In this document: piece after piece, positions 4,200 to 11,837 of the stretch
Layout: every line of letters begins with the position of its first letter
Position numbering within the stretch: position 1 is the stretch's first letter
DNA from: Corallochytrium limacisporum Hawaii
Lineage: Eukaryota; Protista; Pluriformea
Reading direction: 5' to 3'
DNA length: 64,000 bases
Assembly: GCA_002811645.1 (NCBI GenBank)
Contig: PDIP01000001.1
Location: 268,608-332,607, forward strand
Program-made: the position numbers and the translations under genes
The notes under the pieces: model-generated
The model's input: the letters and a program-made list of their open reading frames with translations, nothing else
Databases searched by the model: none
Told to the model about the DNA's origin: nothing

Positions 4200-4850
4200 T
4201 TACCTCGCAGTGTACATAGCAGCAACTAAACTATTAGTTGTCTTGATGAGATCGTTGGCAGCGGTAATCACCACCTGGGGATTGCCCCGCTTAAAGTAGT
4301 CCTTCAGGGACTCACTAAATGTCTTCGATGTGAGAATGAATGCCTTCTTCTTTTCGTCAATGGTCTTGCGGTCCGCAGGACTGAATGCTCGAGACTGTCC
4401 GTCCCTACCCTCATTCAGCAACTGTGCGTTCACTGCCTCCAAGAGGTCCTTGATCATGCTGGCAATGTTCTTAATAGTGGACAGGAAGATACTCCGATCA
4501 TTGAACTGATCTTGAATCTTGGTCAAAGTGGTGCACAGTTTGTACGCAAGCAGCTGTACTGTGCTCTTGGCGTTCTCGGCCGCATCACCGGAGACGCTGG
4601 TGGATTTGGCCTGTTCTTTGTTGTAGATGTTCTGCAGGACATCGCTGACCTTCAAGTCCAGGCCTCCCTCCTTCACACACGCCTGAAGGAATTGCTTTGT
4701 AAACCCACGGTTTGACCGCTCTGCTTCCTCAAAGATTGAACCGATTTCCCGAATTTGCGTCATACTCCTCTCGTCCGCTGTTGTGAACGTGAGAAGCGTG
4801 GGGATGATGATGTGGTCCAGGGCCACACTACCGGCCTGCTTCGGTGCCAT
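4200..4850 (-). CDS. PDCD10: Programmed cell death protein 10 / CCM3 homolog
   Basis: 216 aa. 'FLSTIKNIASMIKDLLEAVN' and 'KKAFILTSKTFSESLKDYFKRG...AANDLIKTTN' match the PDCD10 FAT-homology C-terminal domain. Confidence 0.92.
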   Translation of the reverse strand: MAPKQAGSVALDHIIIPTLLTFTTADERSMTQIREIGSIFEEAERSNRGFTKQFLQACVKEGGLDLKVSDVLQNIYNKEQAKSTSVSGDAAENAKSTVQLLAYKLCTTLTKIQDQFNDRSIFLSTIKNIASMIKDLLEAVNAQLLNEGRDGQSRAFSPADRKTIDEKKKAFILTSKTFSESLKDYFKRGNPQVVITAANDLIKTTNSLVAAMYTAR

Positions 4851-5309: not shown

Positions 5310-5542
5310 NNNNNNNNNNNNNNNNNNNNNNNNNNNNNNNNNNNNNNNNNNNNNNNNNNNNNNNNNNNNNNNNNNNNNNNNNNNNNNNNNNNNNNNNNNN
5401 NNNNNNNNNNNNNNNNNNNNNNNNNNNNNNNNNNNNNNNNNNNNNNNNNNNNNNNNNNNNNNNNNNNNNNNNNNNNNNNNNNNNNNNNNNNNNNNNNNNN
5501 NNNNNNNNNNNNNNNNNNNNNNNNNNNNNNNNNNNNNNNNNN
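5310..5542. other. Assembly gap (N run) within a GC-rich C-run/G-run segment
   Basis: Run of n characters. Confidence 0.99.
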
Positions 5543-5778
5543 GAAGGGGGAAGAGGGGCCGCTACGCCCGGGGGGGGAACCAATCCCAAAACAGTGATTT
5601 TCAAAGAATCCGGTATGTACAATTAAATAGCAAGCGGGAGAGAAAAGGAAAAAAGGAAGGCCTGGGGGGGGGGGGGCGGAATGAGAGAAGAGAAACCTGC
5701 ACCCGAGAACGGAAAAAGAAAACCAAAGAGCCCTCAATCTAGGCAGTATGGGGATACTCAATCTATTTCTGGTTATCA

Positions 5779-8565
5779 TCACATACGGATCAGCCCAGCG
5801 CGGTGAAGAGCCTCTCGCGCTACGTCTTGAATGTGCCGAAATCGATCAGGTCCGAGCATTACTCCGCCCCACCATCGAGTCACGACTACGACGCAGTCCT
5901 GTGCCTGACTGCGCTCGAGAAGTTGGGCCAGCTTGCCACCGGCCCACTTTTCACCATCATCGTCGCTATGGGTCTCGTAAACAGCCACATCAGCTCCTGG
6001 CCGGGCCACACGACACGCCCAGCAGTTGTGCCCCGCTTCGCGCAGCTTGGGATCCATCAGCAACGATTCACGGAACTTCATGGCCTCTTCATACGTTGAG
6101 CAAGGCGCAGCATGAGCTTGGAACACACTCTTGCGATCGACAATGGGATCTGAGCGGGCCATTGCCCACGGGTTCTCCTCATCCGCAAGTTCGACCTTCA
6201 CGCCAACCTGGTCGGAAGCCTTGTACGAGATGGGCTTGCCGTTTGCATCCAACGCCTCTGTGACTTCTGTACGTTTGCTCACTGTGGCGTCTTTGGCACC
6301 TTCAATCATGGCATTGGCCAGACCGGAACCTTCAATCTGCTCGACCGTGAGCAGACTGAGACCGATTTGATCTGATTGGTTGAATGGCCGCGCCATTTCA
6401 CGCAGGAACTTTTTTGCGATCGAAACGGCATCGTCCACGCTGAGATTAGCAAACTTGTCGGTAAGGTACTGTTGGATCCACTTTGGTAAACGGCTCCGTT
6501 TATCCTGGCGGCTGAAGCGCTTGTCTGCAAAGACCATGATACCGTAGTCAGTTTTGCCACGCAGGGCACGTCCGACACACTGACTGGCATGACGCAGCGC
6601 ATCAAAGGTGAGAAAATCATTCTCGCGGATCTGGAACTGATCGCGCAGGTACTCAAGACGTGCGCGCAGGATGCGAGATTCTGTATAGACGTACGGAATG
6701 CCAAACATAATAACCGCACGTCCATAGTGGTGGTCAAAATCGATGCCTTCGGATACCTTACCTCTCGCGACAGAGAAAAGGACTGCACCGCGACCGTTCT
6801 CGCAAGCTTTTCGGTAGTTTTCCAGCGCCAGAGCGGTCTCAGTCTGATCTTGAGTTTCGATGAATAGGAGCTTGTACTTGAGTACTTTCTTGAGTACTCC
6901 GAGGTCATGCCATTTGCTCACAATGCCCTCCATGTAGATATACGATGTAAAGAAGCACACAAGGCCATCTGGAACACTCTTGGCCATTTCCACCAGCAAA
7001 TTGCCATAGTTCCGAATAACTGGCAGATCCTCACGCTGTTCGAAGCGCGAGGTCATCGCCACCTGGTCGCTGCCACGCGTGACGATCATCGGTGCCACGG
7101 ATGGCCGTGCCAGGGTCATTGTGAAACTGTTCGTGGTCACCGGAGTAAAGTTGAGAATCTTTGGGTACATATCCAATGGGCTCAGCGTACCAGACGTAAT
7201 AATCACGCTGCGAAAACGATCAAAAACTGGCTTAATGGCTAAGGATGCATCCATGCAAGAGAAGTGCAGCACCGGATTCGGAATGTTTGGTGCCTTGTCA
7301 TCGAATGGTTCAATGATCAAACTGAATCCTTTAGTGTACGTGCTAACCAAGGTGGCAAAGTTGGTGACCTTCGCAAGAGATGAGTACTCCTCGAGACGTG
7401 GCAACTCTAGTGTCTTCATCAGACTTGCCAGCCGTTCGCTGCAGAACCGTAGCGGTTTGCGTTCGATGCCGACAGACTGGTACACATTTTGCACGAAGGA
7501 CAGCGGACTCTCACTGACCACGTTTGTGACTCGCAGGCGGACCTTTAGGTGCTCCACAAAACGCTTAAGGAAGCCCAGAAAATGTTCCGCTCTCCGCATG
7601 TTGCCCGGGATTGCCTCCTTTAGAACTTCATCTGGAAGGATGGGATTGCTCATGGTAGCATCCGTCTCACGATTCTCGCTCGCAACCCGCAGACCCTCCA
7701 CCAGTTTTTTGTACTCGTCTCGTAGGGCGTTGGTGTCCCGCTCTTTGATCTCGTTCAGGGAACGCTGCAGACTGGTGATGTTGCGGGTCGCACCATCAAG
7801 AATACGGCGGTTGATGGTCACACTCATGGATTCGATGCAGACATTGTCAATGTTATGAGCTTCATCAAAGACCACGACACTGTCTTTAGCCAGTTCCTTG
7901 CTGACTAAATCCGCAATCTTCGGGTCCAGTAGGTAGTAGTAACTGTAAATGATGACATTGCTGAAACTCATCATGTGTCTCGCAAGGAAGTACGGGCACC
8001 ACTTATTCCTTGCGCCTAGATCCCTCAAGTCATCAATTGTGTACACACCCGCAGGTACCATAGCCTCACGTCCTGAGCGATTGAATTCCTCGTAGAACTC
8101 GCACAGATCCACATTTGGATCAGTTTCGGCTCGCATCCGGACCCAGGACGCAGTCAGATCCATACATCTGCCATCAACGATCTTGCCATCGCGTGAGTAC
8201 TGGCTTACTTCAGGGTGGATACAGTAATTTTTACGCGAGGTCAATCCCATTCCCAGGAACTTTACTGGTTCGCCAGTTTCCTTCTCGTAAAACTCCATTA
8301 GTCGTTTCATCTCTTCCAAAGCTTTGTCGATCTCAGGTACGGTACGAGTGCAATAGATGAGCTTCCCCACATTCGGATGTGCCCGTTGGTAAGCAATGAT
8401 GAGACTGAGAATGGTCACGGTCTTGCCAGTACCGGAAGGCATCTCCAGTACTCCATGACCTTTTGCGTCAAGGGCATATTTGAGCTCCCGCATGTACGAG
8501 TACTGCTCTGGATAGATGTAGTCGTACGGGAAGTAGACCAGCAGGCCATCAATATTGAGCTTCAT
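5779..8565 (-). CDS. ERCC2: TFIIH/NER helicase XPD (RAD3) with C-terminal IMPACT/YigZ (UPF0029) domain fusion
   Basis: N-terminus [21 protein letters not shown], Walker A MPSGTGKT, four Fe-S cysteines, DEAH box, and [14 protein letters not shown]. After about aa 800: 'DRKSVFQAH...HNCWACR...[12 protein letters not shown]...[20 protein letters not shown]', the UPF0029 signature. Confidence 0.97.
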
Positions 8566-8880
8566 GGTTATTTTAACCCTCTTGAATGGTTAGAACTGTT
8601 ATACTATGTGTTTTGATCAACTTCCTGATCCCTTGCTTTACATCTTGAAGCCCCGGTCGTTGTTATTAAATCTACTACGGCTTGAGATCTCGTCTGCTTA
8701 CAAGTAAGTGCTCTTTCTACAACATCGGCCTTCTTATCAGTCTGTGCTCAAGTACCACTTTTGGCGTATGGTAACATGTACACATTTGTGAGGAGTTCAC
8801 TCTGCTTACTCTCCCTGATCTGTCTGCGAACAAGATGGCTGTGTTTGCGTTCAACTGGTAAAGCGCGGAATGGGATCGCT

Positions 8881-8970
8881 CCCCTCTCCCCCCTGGAGGG
8901 GGGGCTTTTGGTGTAGGGAGACGGTGAGCTCATTACAGGGCCCCCGGCCCCCCCCCCTCCCGCGGGGGGG
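8881..8970. promoter_or_regulatory. C-run/G-run element in the XPD-DHX16 divergent intergenic region
   Basis: CCCCCTGGAGGGGGGG and CCCCCCCCCCTCCCGCGGGGGGG. Similar elements recur upstream of other genes. Confidence 0.45.
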
Positions 8971-9254
8971 AGAGAGCAAGGGTGGAAATTCTCACCCGCC
9001 TCTGCCGGAGGTGTGATGTGCGTGTCCTAACGGCCATCGTTGCGTCTTGTACTGGAAAGCGCTTGGCGCACCTGTCGTGTCGCTTGGAGCACGGTAGCGG
9101 TATTTGATCTGCTATGCTCTGAATGAAGCATCTAAAGTCGGTAGCAACACTAATATGAACTGTGAACATATACGCGGAGAAACGGATATCGGAATAGTGG
9201 GAATGTCGTCTACCGAGTTGTCAGCTACGTAGGGTATATTCTTGGGACTATGCC

Positions 9255-11837
9255 ATGCAGTCAGAAAGAAAACAGAAATCTGCTGACCCAAAGCCACAGC
9301 CACACATTCTAAAGGATGAGGACGGCCACTACAGTATTCCAAACGAAGATGATGGAGCAAAACTTGAGGAATATGCTGAGCAAGACACAACTGACGATGC
9401 CCGCCTGCGCAGGCGCCGGTGGAGGAAAGAGGACAGGAGAGTTGGCGGTTTGAAGCGCTCCAATCTGTCCAATAAATCGGGAGGATATCAATCCTTTGAA
9501 AGAACGCAACTAGAGAAGGTTTCTTTAACCCAGCCAGCAGTTCGACCGGATGGAGCGATACGGCACCACGGGGAAGACCAGAGTCGAAAATATGATCTTA
9601 TCTTTGACGATACCATCGACTTCGTTACTGCCCGCAAGGCACTGACACACAGAGATCTTCTCCCAAATGATGATGAAGAAGAACAGGTTACGGAAAGTGA
9701 AAGCAACCATCGAAAAGAGCCTACCAGTAGTAGAGAAACTGTTGATAGTAAAGCAGCGGGCAGCATCCGTAAACTTCGGCAATCTTTGCCAGTGTTCGCG
9801 CATCGTGAACAAATTCTCAACACAATCGAGCAGAACACTGTCACTGTGCTTGTGGGTGAGACAGGCAGTGGTAAGACTACGCAGATCCCACAGTATCTGT
9901 ACGAGGCTGGATATTGCAAGGGTGGAGGAATGATCGGCGTCACCCAGCCGCGGAGGGTTGCAGCCATGAGCGTGGCCAAACGTGTGAGCGAGGAAATGGA
10001 CGTGGCTTTGGGCCAAGAGGTCGGCTATTCAATCCGATTTGAAGACATGACCTCCAAGAAGACTCGTCTTAAGTACATGACAGATGGTATGCTTCTGCGG
10101 GAAATGATCAACGACGGCAACCTAGAGCGGTATAGTGTCATTGTGATTGACGAGGCCCATGAACGGACTCTGCACACTGACATTCTCTTCGGGTTGCTCC
10201 GGGATCTGTGTCGGGCCAGGGCAGATACCGGTGTGCCTTTAAAGCTGATCATTGCGAGTGCAACTCTGGATGCGCAACGATTCGCTGAATTCTTTAACAA
10301 CGCTCCAATTGTTACAGTTCCGGGCAGGATGTATCCCGTGGACATCTTCTACACCAAGCAGCCGGAACCCGACTACGTGGAGGCGGCGATTGTGGCGGTA
10401 CTGCAGATCCACCTTACACAGCCGATGCCAGGAGATATCTTGGTCTTCCTTACAGGCCAAGACGAAATCGAGGGTGTCATGGATGGCCTAGAAACGCGCA
10501 TGGCTGCCATTCTTCCCAAAGACGACGAGGGCAAGCTACCCCCTCTTTGTACACTTCCAATTTACGCTTCCCTGCCACCAGAACAGCAGGCAAGGATTTT
10601 TCGGCCACCCGAGCCGAAAACTGCGAGGAAGTGCATCCTTGCCACAAACATTGCAGAGACTTCCCTGACTATTGACGGCATCGTCTTTGTGGTCGACACC
10701 GGTCTGGCGAAGCAGAGTAATTACAATGCGCGATCCGGTATGGATTCGCTTCTGGTGGAGCCAATCTCCCAGGCAAGTGCAAATCAGCGGGCTGGCCGCG
10801 CCGGTCGCGTTCAGGCTGGAAAGTGCTTCCGGCTCTATACTCAGCAATCCTTCGAAGCTGACTTGCTGAAGGCCACTGTGCCCGAAATCCAGCGTACAAA
10901 TCTACGCAATGTAGTGCTCATGCTCAAGATGCTTGGGGTGGACGATCTGTTAAACTTTGGGTTCATGGACCCCCCACCGGCGGAGACCTTAATACGGGCA
11001 TTGGAAGAGCTGTACGCCCTTGGAGCGCTTGCCTCGAATGGTCAATTAACCCATCTGGGAACCCGCATGGCCGCACTTCCCTTCGACCCCCAGCTCTCCC
11101 GTTCGATCTTTGCGGCCGAAGAGTACGGCTGTTTAGACGAAATGCTTACCGTTGCAGCCATGTTGTCAGTGTCCAGCGGAAGCGGTGGTTCCGGTCCATT
11201 TTACCGGCCGCGCGGCCGCAAGCTCGAGGCCGACCAGGCCCACCGCCAGCTGCATGACCCGAGAGGAGACCACCTGACCCTTTTCAATGCTTACCATGAG
11301 TGGGAAGGCAGTGGGTACTCCAGCAACTGGTGCTATGCCCATTTCATCCATCACCGGATCATGAAACGCGCACGGGACGTACGGGACCAGCTTGAGGATT
11401 TATGCGAACGGCACGGCATGGCCATGAGCAGTGTAAAACTTGACGACGAGGATCCTCGTGGCAAGACCAGGCTTGAAGACTACACTGTACCGATCCGCAA
11501 GGCCTTGGTCGCTGGTTACTTCTACCACACTGCCCGAATCGGCTCGGGGGGCGGTTACGAGGCGTTGAGAGCCCTACAGTCGCCCTCCTCTGGCGGAAGC
11601 AGTGGCAGTGGTCAGGTCACTGTCTATATCCATCCGTCGTCCTCCCTGGCCTCCAAACCACCGCGCATGGTCATCTACCACGAACTCGTGCTCACCAAGA
11701 AGGAATATATGCGGCAAATTGTGGCCATCGAGCCCGCCTGGCTGCAGGAATTGGTGCCACACTTTTACAGCGTGGATGAAGTTTCGGAGATGACAAAACA
11801 CAAGAAGAAGATGCCCAAGGCGATGCATAGGTGCTGA
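9255..11837 (+). CDS. DHX16: Spliceosomal DEAH-box RNA helicase, PRP2/DHX16 type
   Basis: GETGSGKTTQIPQYL, TQPRRVAAMSVA, DEAHER, SAT and QRAGRAGR motifs. 'LRQSLPVF', 'YTKQPEPDYVEAA' and C-terminal 'KKKMPK' favour DHX16 over DHX8/DHX38. Confidence 0.85.
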   Translation: MQSERKQKSADPKPQPHILKDEDGHYSIPNEDDGAKLEEYAEQDTTDDARLRRRRWRKEDRRVGGLKRSNLSNKSGGYQSFERTQLEKVSLTQPAVRPDGAIRHHGEDQSRKYDLIFDDTIDFVTARKALTHRDLLPNDDEEEQVTESESNHRKEPTSSRETVDSKAAGSIRKLRQSLPVFAHREQILNTIEQNTVTVLVGETGSGKTTQIPQYLYEAGYCKGGGMIGVTQPRRVAAMSVAKRVSEEMDVALGQEVGYSIRFEDMTSKKTRLKYMTDGMLLREMINDGNLERYSVIVIDEAHERTLHTDILFGLLRDLCRARADTGVPLKLIIASATLDAQRFAEFFNNAPIVTVPGRMYPVDIFYTKQPEPDYVEAAIVAVLQIHLTQPMPGDILVFLTGQDEIEGVMDGLETRMAAILPKDDEGKLPPLCTLPIYASLPPEQQARIFRPPEPKTARKCILATNIAETSLTIDGIVFVVDTGLAKQSNYNARSGMDSLLVEPISQASANQRAGRAGRVQAGKCFRLYTQQSFEADLLKATVPEIQRTNLRNVVLMLKMLGVDDLLNFGFMDPPPAETLIRALEELYALGALASNGQLTHLGTRMAALPFDPQLSRSIFAAEEYGCLDEMLTVAAMLSVSSGSGGSGPFYRPRGRKLEADQAHRQLHDPRGDHLTLFNAYHEWEGSGYSSNWCYAHFIHHRIMKRARDVRDQLEDLCERHGMAMSSVKLDDEDPRGKTRLEDYTVPIRKALVAGYFYHTARIGSGGGYEALRALQSPSSGGSSGSGQVTVYIHPSSSLASKPPRMVIYHELVLTKKEYMRQIVAIEPAWLQELVPHFYSVDEVSEMTKHKKKMPKAMHRC

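Follow-up and report, generated by a model that had tools for sequence, protein, structure and literature searches.

An XPD helicase continued by an IMPACT-type UPF0029 domain in Corallochytrium limacisporum

Domain structure of the XPD-UPF0029 gene

The stretch of DNA analysed here, referred to throughout as the window, comprises 64,000 nucleotides (nt) of the genome of Corallochytrium limacisporum Hawaii (GenBank assembly GCA_002811645.1, contig PDIP01000001.1, positions 268,608 to 332,607 of the forward strand), and the gene under study is an open reading frame (ORF) on its minus strand which, in the ORF listing of the window, counts 928 codons, begins with ATG and is free of internal stops (Table 1). 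Its N-terminal part corresponds to the TFIIH subunit XPD, a 5'-3' helicase of DNA repair and transcription, and the open frame runs on for 181 codons past the XPD homology, with a full UPF0029 profile being matched in that same frame. As this full-length match lies in frame 181 codons beyond the normal end of XPD, chance is excluded as an explanation for the fusion. Judged from the sequence comparisons set out below, the observation made in an earlier sequence-only reading of this DNA is confirmed, and it is likely that the locus represents a genuine fusion gene and the sole XPD of the organism, composed of a complete XPD, a linker of approximately 50 residues and a complete IMPACT-type UPF0029 domain that would be tethered to TFIIH, with the loss of a stop codon as its most likely origin.

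The XPD part was matched by the NCBIfam model TIGR00604 (rad3) over residues 8-708 with 870.7 bits (cut-off 246.95), and in a sequence search of the PDB residues 1-747 of human XPD (of 760) aligned residue for residue with residues 1-747 of the fusion at approximately 1185 bits. Motif I (GTGKT, 45-49), the DEAH box (234-237) and cysteines C115, C134, C155 and C190, which align with the 4Fe-4S cysteines of human XPD, were all found, the Arch (HBB) and Helicase_C_2 domains follow one another in the expected order, and R683 and R722 (p44-contact helix) are kept at the same positions as in the human protein. This colinearity and the residue check bear out the sequence-only reading, which had described an XPD with all helicase motifs and four Fe-S cysteines. 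In human TFIIH, the C-terminal segment of XPD runs along RecA2 and its helix 718-725 touches p44, while the CAK module is carried by XPD via MAT1 (PMC6422496). The helicase motifs, the Fe-S cysteines, the Arch domain, R683 and the R722 helix are common to the fusion and to the XPD/ERCC2/Rad3 proteins with which it was compared (human XPD in PDB 6nmi and 8ebs; Capsaspora CAOG_08527); in contrast to the fusion, which continues for 181 residues past position 747, other XPDs stop approximately 13 residues beyond it, at total lengths of about 758-780 amino acids (aa).

The linker agrees in length with the stretch of roughly 55 aa that had been read earlier, and the coordinates and domain order given at that time were also correct. 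No Pfam family was matched by residues 745-810, even at E values of up to 10. The UPF0029 domain (PF01205), previously described as complete and as following XPD without a stop, was recognised by Pfam over profile positions 1-107 of 107 with 97.3 bits (cut-off 27; E 6.4e-28), and displays the motifs DRKS (810-813), DDDGE (868-872), RWWGG (897-901) and LGPDRF (904-909); the protein ends 8 residues past the Pfam envelope. The Pfam search of the 928-aa protein returned all of the expected domains (DEAD_2, HBB, Helicase_C_2 and UPF0029) and no RWD match, in agreement with the reported absence of an RWD domain. An AlphaFold2 model, which was built for residues 740-928 only and with 70 aligned sequences, reached a pLDDT of 95-98 over residues 800-928, with low values over most of 740-799.

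The UPF0029 ancient domain is conserved from bacteria to humans. When the modelled domain was searched with Foldseek, Yih1 (6bqi) was returned first (E 5.8e-11), then TT1547 (2cve, E 2.7e-07) and YigZ (1vi7, E 1.4e-06), and no match other than these three was found below E 0.01. Similarly, the sequence match of the UPF0029 part to Yih1 (6bqi, E 1.9e-25) was far better than those to the bacterial proteins TT1547 or YigZ. The C-terminal domain of the fusion is of the eukaryotic IMPACT type, sharing with IMPACT/Yih1 the motifs DRKS, DDDGE, RW-GG and LGPDRF-HI and displaying 43% identity to 6bqi in the structural alignment. In the GCN2 regulator IMPACT/Yih1, the N-terminal RWD domain competes with GCN2 for GCN1; the fusion, however, lacks RWD, i.e. 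the GCN1-binding module that defines IMPACT function, and the domain is preceded by a helicase instead. Bacterial YigZ and TT1547 (UPF0029 plus DUF1949; 1vi7 and 2cve) display the same UPF0029 fold, whereas their second domain, DUF1949, is absent from the fusion and the sequence similarity of the fused domain to YigZ is much lower than to eukaryotic IMPACT domains. Furthermore, the YigZ model TIGR00257 was matched at model positions 19-110 only and with 34.2 bits, below the membership cut-off of 167.95. The GC content at third codon positions is similar over the XPD part, the linker and the UPF0029 domain (0.59, 0.64 and 0.58, respectively), and the composition gives no sign of a foreign origin.

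Table 1. Features of the fusion gene (window coordinates) and of the mini-IMPACT gene elsewhere in the genome
Feature	Position	Strand	Basis
XPD-UPF0029 fusion, complete coding sequence, 928 aa	5779..8565	-	ORF, Pfam, NCBIfam; stop codon TGA at 5779-5781
XPD/Rad3 part, residues 1-747	6325..8565	-	rad3 model and colinearity with human XPD
DEAD_2 domain, residues 71-254	7804..8355	-	Pfam
HBB (Arch) domain, residues 270-413	7327..7758	-	Pfam
Helicase_C_2 domain, residues 524-699	6469..6996	-	Pfam
Linker, residues 748-799	6169..6324	-	No Pfam match, low AlphaFold2 confidence
UPF0029 (IMPACT ancient) domain as folded, residues 800-928	5782..6168	-	Pfam, PDB match, AlphaFold2, Foldseek
UPF0029 Pfam envelope, residues 811-920	5806-6135	-	Pfam
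Transcript-like contigs (two samples), full extent	5742..8693	-	Assembled contigs aligned to the window
Mini-IMPACT and join to the next gene	L003:1429-1921 (contig C250:39260-39752)		ORF reading

DNA and transcript-like contigs across the joined frame

Support for the joined frame was assessed with assembled contigs (rather than reads), which were aligned over window positions 5543-9300. A DNA contig of the likely source sample spans positions 5702-6372 with 0 differences, and overlaps the next contig (6343-8957) by 30 nt. Additionally, two samples from 2015, belonging to different studies, provided assemblies that are presumed to derive from RNA. In the first of these, one contig of 2955 nt covers positions 5750-8692 with 0 differences, and in the second one contig of 2953 nt covers positions 5742-8693 with 12 substitutions, neither showing a gap or joint. 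Over the interval 6100-6400, for which the sequence-only reading had looked to DNA and RNA evidence, the single contigs of both presumed RNA assemblies cross without a stop or gap, and the two DNA contigs named above meet at 6343-6372.

The transcript-like contigs extend approximately 127 nt upstream of the ATG and approximately 30-37 nt past the stop codon. The intergenic stretch at about 8694-9166 is uncovered in both presumed RNA assemblies (up to 9235 in one of them), with coverage resuming in the adjoining DEAH-box helicase gene, and each assembly totals approximately 13-14 million letters as compared to a genome of 24 Mb. Both assemblies fit RNA by virtue of this uncovered intergenic stretch and their small total size, the label itself being a guess, and from the transcript-like contigs the fusion is presumed to be expressed. 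The 12 substitutions of the second isolate result only in the replacements I273V and G776S and in no stop; G776S, located in the linker, is the only non-synonymous difference between the isolates outside the XPD part, while the UPF0029 domain is unchanged.

Separately, small shares of the sampled words of the fusion gene were detected in marine metagenome runs, and the alignment of one sea-water run yielded short pieces of low depth with one to two differences each, pointing to the presence of the organism or a very close relative in that sample.

XPD, TFIIH partners and UPF0029 genes in the host genome

The assembled genome comprises 24,109,830 bases in 286 contigs, and the genes of the window are intron-free, in line with the 24.1 Mb and 0.0 introns per kb of coding sequence that have been published for C. 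limacisporum (PMC5560861). Capsaspora XPD, the closest named XPD to the fusion (71% identity), was searched against the whole genome and identified the fusion locus at that level of identity, as well as three other DEAD_2 helicases at 23-34%. Since these three reach only 23-34% as opposed to 71%, the fusion is the only XPD orthologue and there is no spare copy. p44/Ssl1 and MAT1 are likewise encoded in the genome, with matches of 251 and 136 bits, respectively.

Two further UPF0029 genes are located 2.4 kb apart on contig C250. One encodes a 334-aa IMPACT-like protein (L001:880-1884), which is likely to be the canonical IMPACT of this genome, and the other a 144-aa mini-IMPACT (L003:1429-1863). 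The sequence-only reading had proposed a search for a separate RWD-IMPACT gene; the IMPACT-like gene was located, and its N-terminal RWD match was weak (E 0.004, below the Pfam cut-off). The fused UPF0029 domain shares 47% identity with the ancient domain of the 334-aa protein and 35% with the mini-IMPACT. The UPF0029 domain of the 334-aa ORF recurs without differences in a public 312-aa protein, which probably represents the same gene with a later start.

Origin of the fusion

The most likely origin of the fusion in this very compact genome, by analogy, is the loss of a stop codon: the XPD stop would have been lost, so that translation proceeded into a small stand-alone UPF0029 gene located just downstream. 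Met802, which lies eight residues ahead of the DRKS motif, is a candidate for the old start codon of this stand-alone gene. Such an origin is suggested by the position of Met802, by the linker without a family match and by the mini-IMPACT gene, which is itself one stop codon away from the next gene. In the latter case, the TAG of the mini-IMPACT (L003:1861-1863) and the ATG with which the next gene begins (L003:1919) are separated by 18 sense codons, all in frame; the distance from this stop to the downstream ATG is 55 nt, and this ATG lies within a 449-aa ORF that is listed from L003:1870. Readthrough or loss of this stop would create a second UPF0029 fusion.

Distribution of the architecture

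The sequence-only reading knew of no second instance of this architecture, and the same picture emerged from searches of proteins, representatives and metagenomes, which within their blind spots revealed no other XPD-UPF0029 protein. When PF01205 was sought in XPD-like proteins, only the window's own protein carried it among the best 120 of 4141. A word-index search scored on residues 760-928, in proteins of 510-1624 aa, returned, besides the own protein, only a cockroach protein of 601 aa that lacks helicase domains, although its recall is limited as it missed known UPF0029 proteins of 569-610 aa. In a junction-scored word-index search (residues 672-928), the own protein obtained 574 bits and was followed by plain XPDs with at most 110 bits. 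An exhaustive search of 1.84 billion representatives at 50% identity with residues 690-928 yielded only IMPACT-type proteins of at most 610 aa; this search did not list the own protein, which must have been hidden behind an unfused XPD representative, and it is consequently largely blind to XPD fusions and weak evidence of absence. Furthermore, none of 36 metagenome UPF0029 loci (28-52% identity) had XPD sequence alongside, and the fusion was not mentioned in the literature retrieved for XPD with IMPACT/UPF0029, for YigZ or for Corallochytrium with TFIIH, where 'impact' and 'yigz' are noisy search terms. The gene model is already public as an identical 928-aa protein whose architecture has gone unremarked, and the novelty is the arrangement: XPD-UPF0029 is apparently a new and lineage-restricted arrangement of two known domains.

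Among eukaryotic UPF0029 proteins that lack RWD (the 144-aa mini-IMPACT and the tandem-domain proteins P0122, P0123 and Actinia tenebrosa LOC116292303), the ancient domain likewise occurs without RWD, duplicated or rearranged, but none of them is joined to a helicase or TFIIH subunit as in the fusion. P0122, P0123 and P0125, which are eukaryotic or metagenomic, have two or three tandem UPF0029 domains and no RWD, an example of this type being the 610-aa Actinia tenebrosa protein. Unusual XPD models were also encountered. Those of the oysters Magallana gigas and Ostrea edulis (P0067 and P0304; 1184 and 1203 aa, respectively) list PF10237 and PF06839 between HBB and Helicase_C_2, which may reflect a nested gene or a merged gene model, and the 980-aa EukProt model P0003 has a duplicated DEAD_2 region (approximately 95-310 repeated at approximately 300-520) ahead of a normal XPD end, probably as an artefact of assembly or gene modelling.

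Proposed tethering to TFIIH and alternative explanations

As the protein is the only XPD orthologue, retains the p44-contact helix with R722 and is accompanied by genes for p44 and MAT1, it is fair to infer, as had been proposed from the sequence, that the UPF0029 domain is tethered to TFIIH. Every TFIIH core in the organism would then carry one IMPACT-type domain on a flexible tether, which would leave the C-terminal segment of XPD (the segment along RecA2 in human TFIIH) near the XPD-p44 side. The UPF0029 domain would bring its own predicted conserved binding surface next to TFIIH, leaving the catalytic core of XPD unchanged. A docking prediction of XPD residues 1-760 with UPF0029 residues 795-928, performed without controls, gave a score of 0.00, which provides no answer and counts neither way. 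Nothing in the analysis directly supports the nucleic-acid role in nucleotide excision repair or transcription initiation that had been suggested for the domain, and in the literature the UPF0029 ancient domain is still regarded as one of unknown function (PMC7140605).

Several points weigh against the reading of an expressed fusion protein that arose by stop loss and is held at TFIIH. The contigs of the two presumed RNA assemblies show neither transcript starts nor ends nor relative amounts, and a shortened XPD message may exist, as may an extra product that starts at one of the internal methionines Met753 or Met802. No relative displays an XPD gene adjoining a UPF0029 gene (in Capsaspora, which was checked, the downstream neighbour is a DUF747 gene), and the stop-loss scenario is drawn by analogy only. 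In a quick tree, the fused domain lies on a long branch, with 1.37 changes per column as compared to a median of 0.44, and constraint on it may be partly relaxed; it is sister to neither of the two UPF0029 paralogues of the genome, and the tree does not identify the donor gene. The domain groups with another long branch (support 81), a pairing that is possibly due to long-branch attraction. Additionally, an alignment with 156 homologous domains contains 42 columns with a conservation of at least 80%, and the fused copy retains 39 of them, including all those that reach at least 95%; these homologues were, however, picked by similarity to the query and the count is hence partly circular. The full protein was also aligned together with XPDs and UPF0029 segments, but this composite alignment was dropped, as the short segments were misaligned onto the helicase.

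It was also considered that the single protein is an artefact, either of a DNA misjoin or of a locus that yields two products, namely XPD and a UPF0029 protein from an internal methionine such as Met802. The break between the DNA contigs of one run, which are linked by the 30-nt overlap only and one of which has an adapter-like loose end, is compatible with a misjoin, as is a run of N located 237 nt past the stop codon, and the blindness of contigs to transcript ends leaves room for two products. However, the DNA contig break falls inside the XPD homology (residues 731-741) and not at the domain boundary, and it is crossed by two independent assemblies as well as the reference assembly in single gap-free contigs. 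Furthermore, the XPD frame has no stop before position 5781, and any XPD message ending earlier would therefore be stopless, while an identical 928-aa protein is already present in a public protein collection; an artefact of either type is accordingly considered very unlikely.

A real fusion may nonetheless be a neutral passenger, in which the loss of a stop in a compact genome brought two unrelated genes together, an appendage is tolerated at the XPD C-terminus, and the UPF0029 domain acts like a free mini-IMPACT or does nothing useful, without a functional link to TFIIH. We rate this as a substantial possibility, albeit not the most probable outcome. Fusions confined to one lineage are frequent in compact protist genomes and often represent tolerated accidents. 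The present fusion was found in one organism only, its linker lacks a family match and obtains low confidence in the model, the branch of the fused domain is long, and both a full IMPACT-like gene and a mini-IMPACT are retained in the genome, the near-fusion of the latter with the next gene showing how easily such joins could arise; moreover, the XPD gene of Capsaspora has no UPF0029 neighbour. Set against this, the domain has diverged and yet retains almost all of the conserved positions, two isolates carry an intact frame in which the domain is unchanged, and anything attached to the sole copy of an essential TFIIH subunit is open to selection. At the other extreme, the fusion may act as a Rosetta stone, making permanent a general nuclear link of the ancient domain to TFIIH or its kinase module (e.g. 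through binding of a CDK or nucleic acid). Yih1 and IMPACT co-purify with Cdc28/CDK1, and a fragment that contains the ancient domain (133-258) still binds, yet the main Cdc28-binding determinant of Yih1 is its linker and not the ancient domain (PMC4503747). The carriage of CAK by XPD via MAT1, a gene for which is present in the genome, and the intact conserved loops of the fused domain are consistent with such a link, whereas no other organism was found with the fusion and no TFIIH link for IMPACT was encountered in the literature searched. The Rosetta-stone inference put forward in the sequence-only reading is weak, because in a very compact genome a fusion confined to one lineage may be an accident that has been tolerated, and we regard a general link of this kind as unlikely. 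That the fusion records a general and unrecognised link of the IMPACT ancient domain to TFIIH or CAK, with a CDK or a nucleic-acid intermediate as the possible binding partner of the domain at TFIIH, appears highly improbable to us; if true, the ancient domain would act in the nucleus across eukaryotes, in transcription, repair or the control of the cell cycle.

The value of the fusion lies in that a UPF0029 domain without an assigned activity (PMC7140605) is fixed to the organism's only XPD, which offers a place to seek its partners, be it TFIIH, CAK, or DNA in repair or promoter opening. Stable transfection is available for Corallochytrium (bioRxiv 10.1101/2020.11.12.379420), which makes it feasible to tag or delete the appendage. 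Should the domain prove dispensable, the case would illustrate gene fusion by stop loss in an intron-free, packed genome and an XPD C-terminus that tolerates an addition of 20 kDa. An enigmatic, universally conserved domain is tied to an essential and well-understood machine in a transfectable organism, and the interest of this arrangement is moderate as such fusions are often accidents.

Neighbouring genes

The run of N mentioned above is an assembly gap at window positions 5310-5542 with G and C homopolymer flanks; it lies outside the fusion gene, between XPD and a PDCD10-like gene, and the DNA contigs of one run end there in poly-G loose ends. The PDCD10-like gene (4200-4850, minus strand) encodes 216 aa, with a PDCD10/CCM3 domain (E 1e-12) at the C-terminus. 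On the other side of the fusion, positions 9255-11837 (plus strand) hold the gene of a DEAH-box RNA helicase (860 aa; HA2 and OB domains), which is divergently oriented with respect to XPD and separated from it by a spacer of 689 nt.

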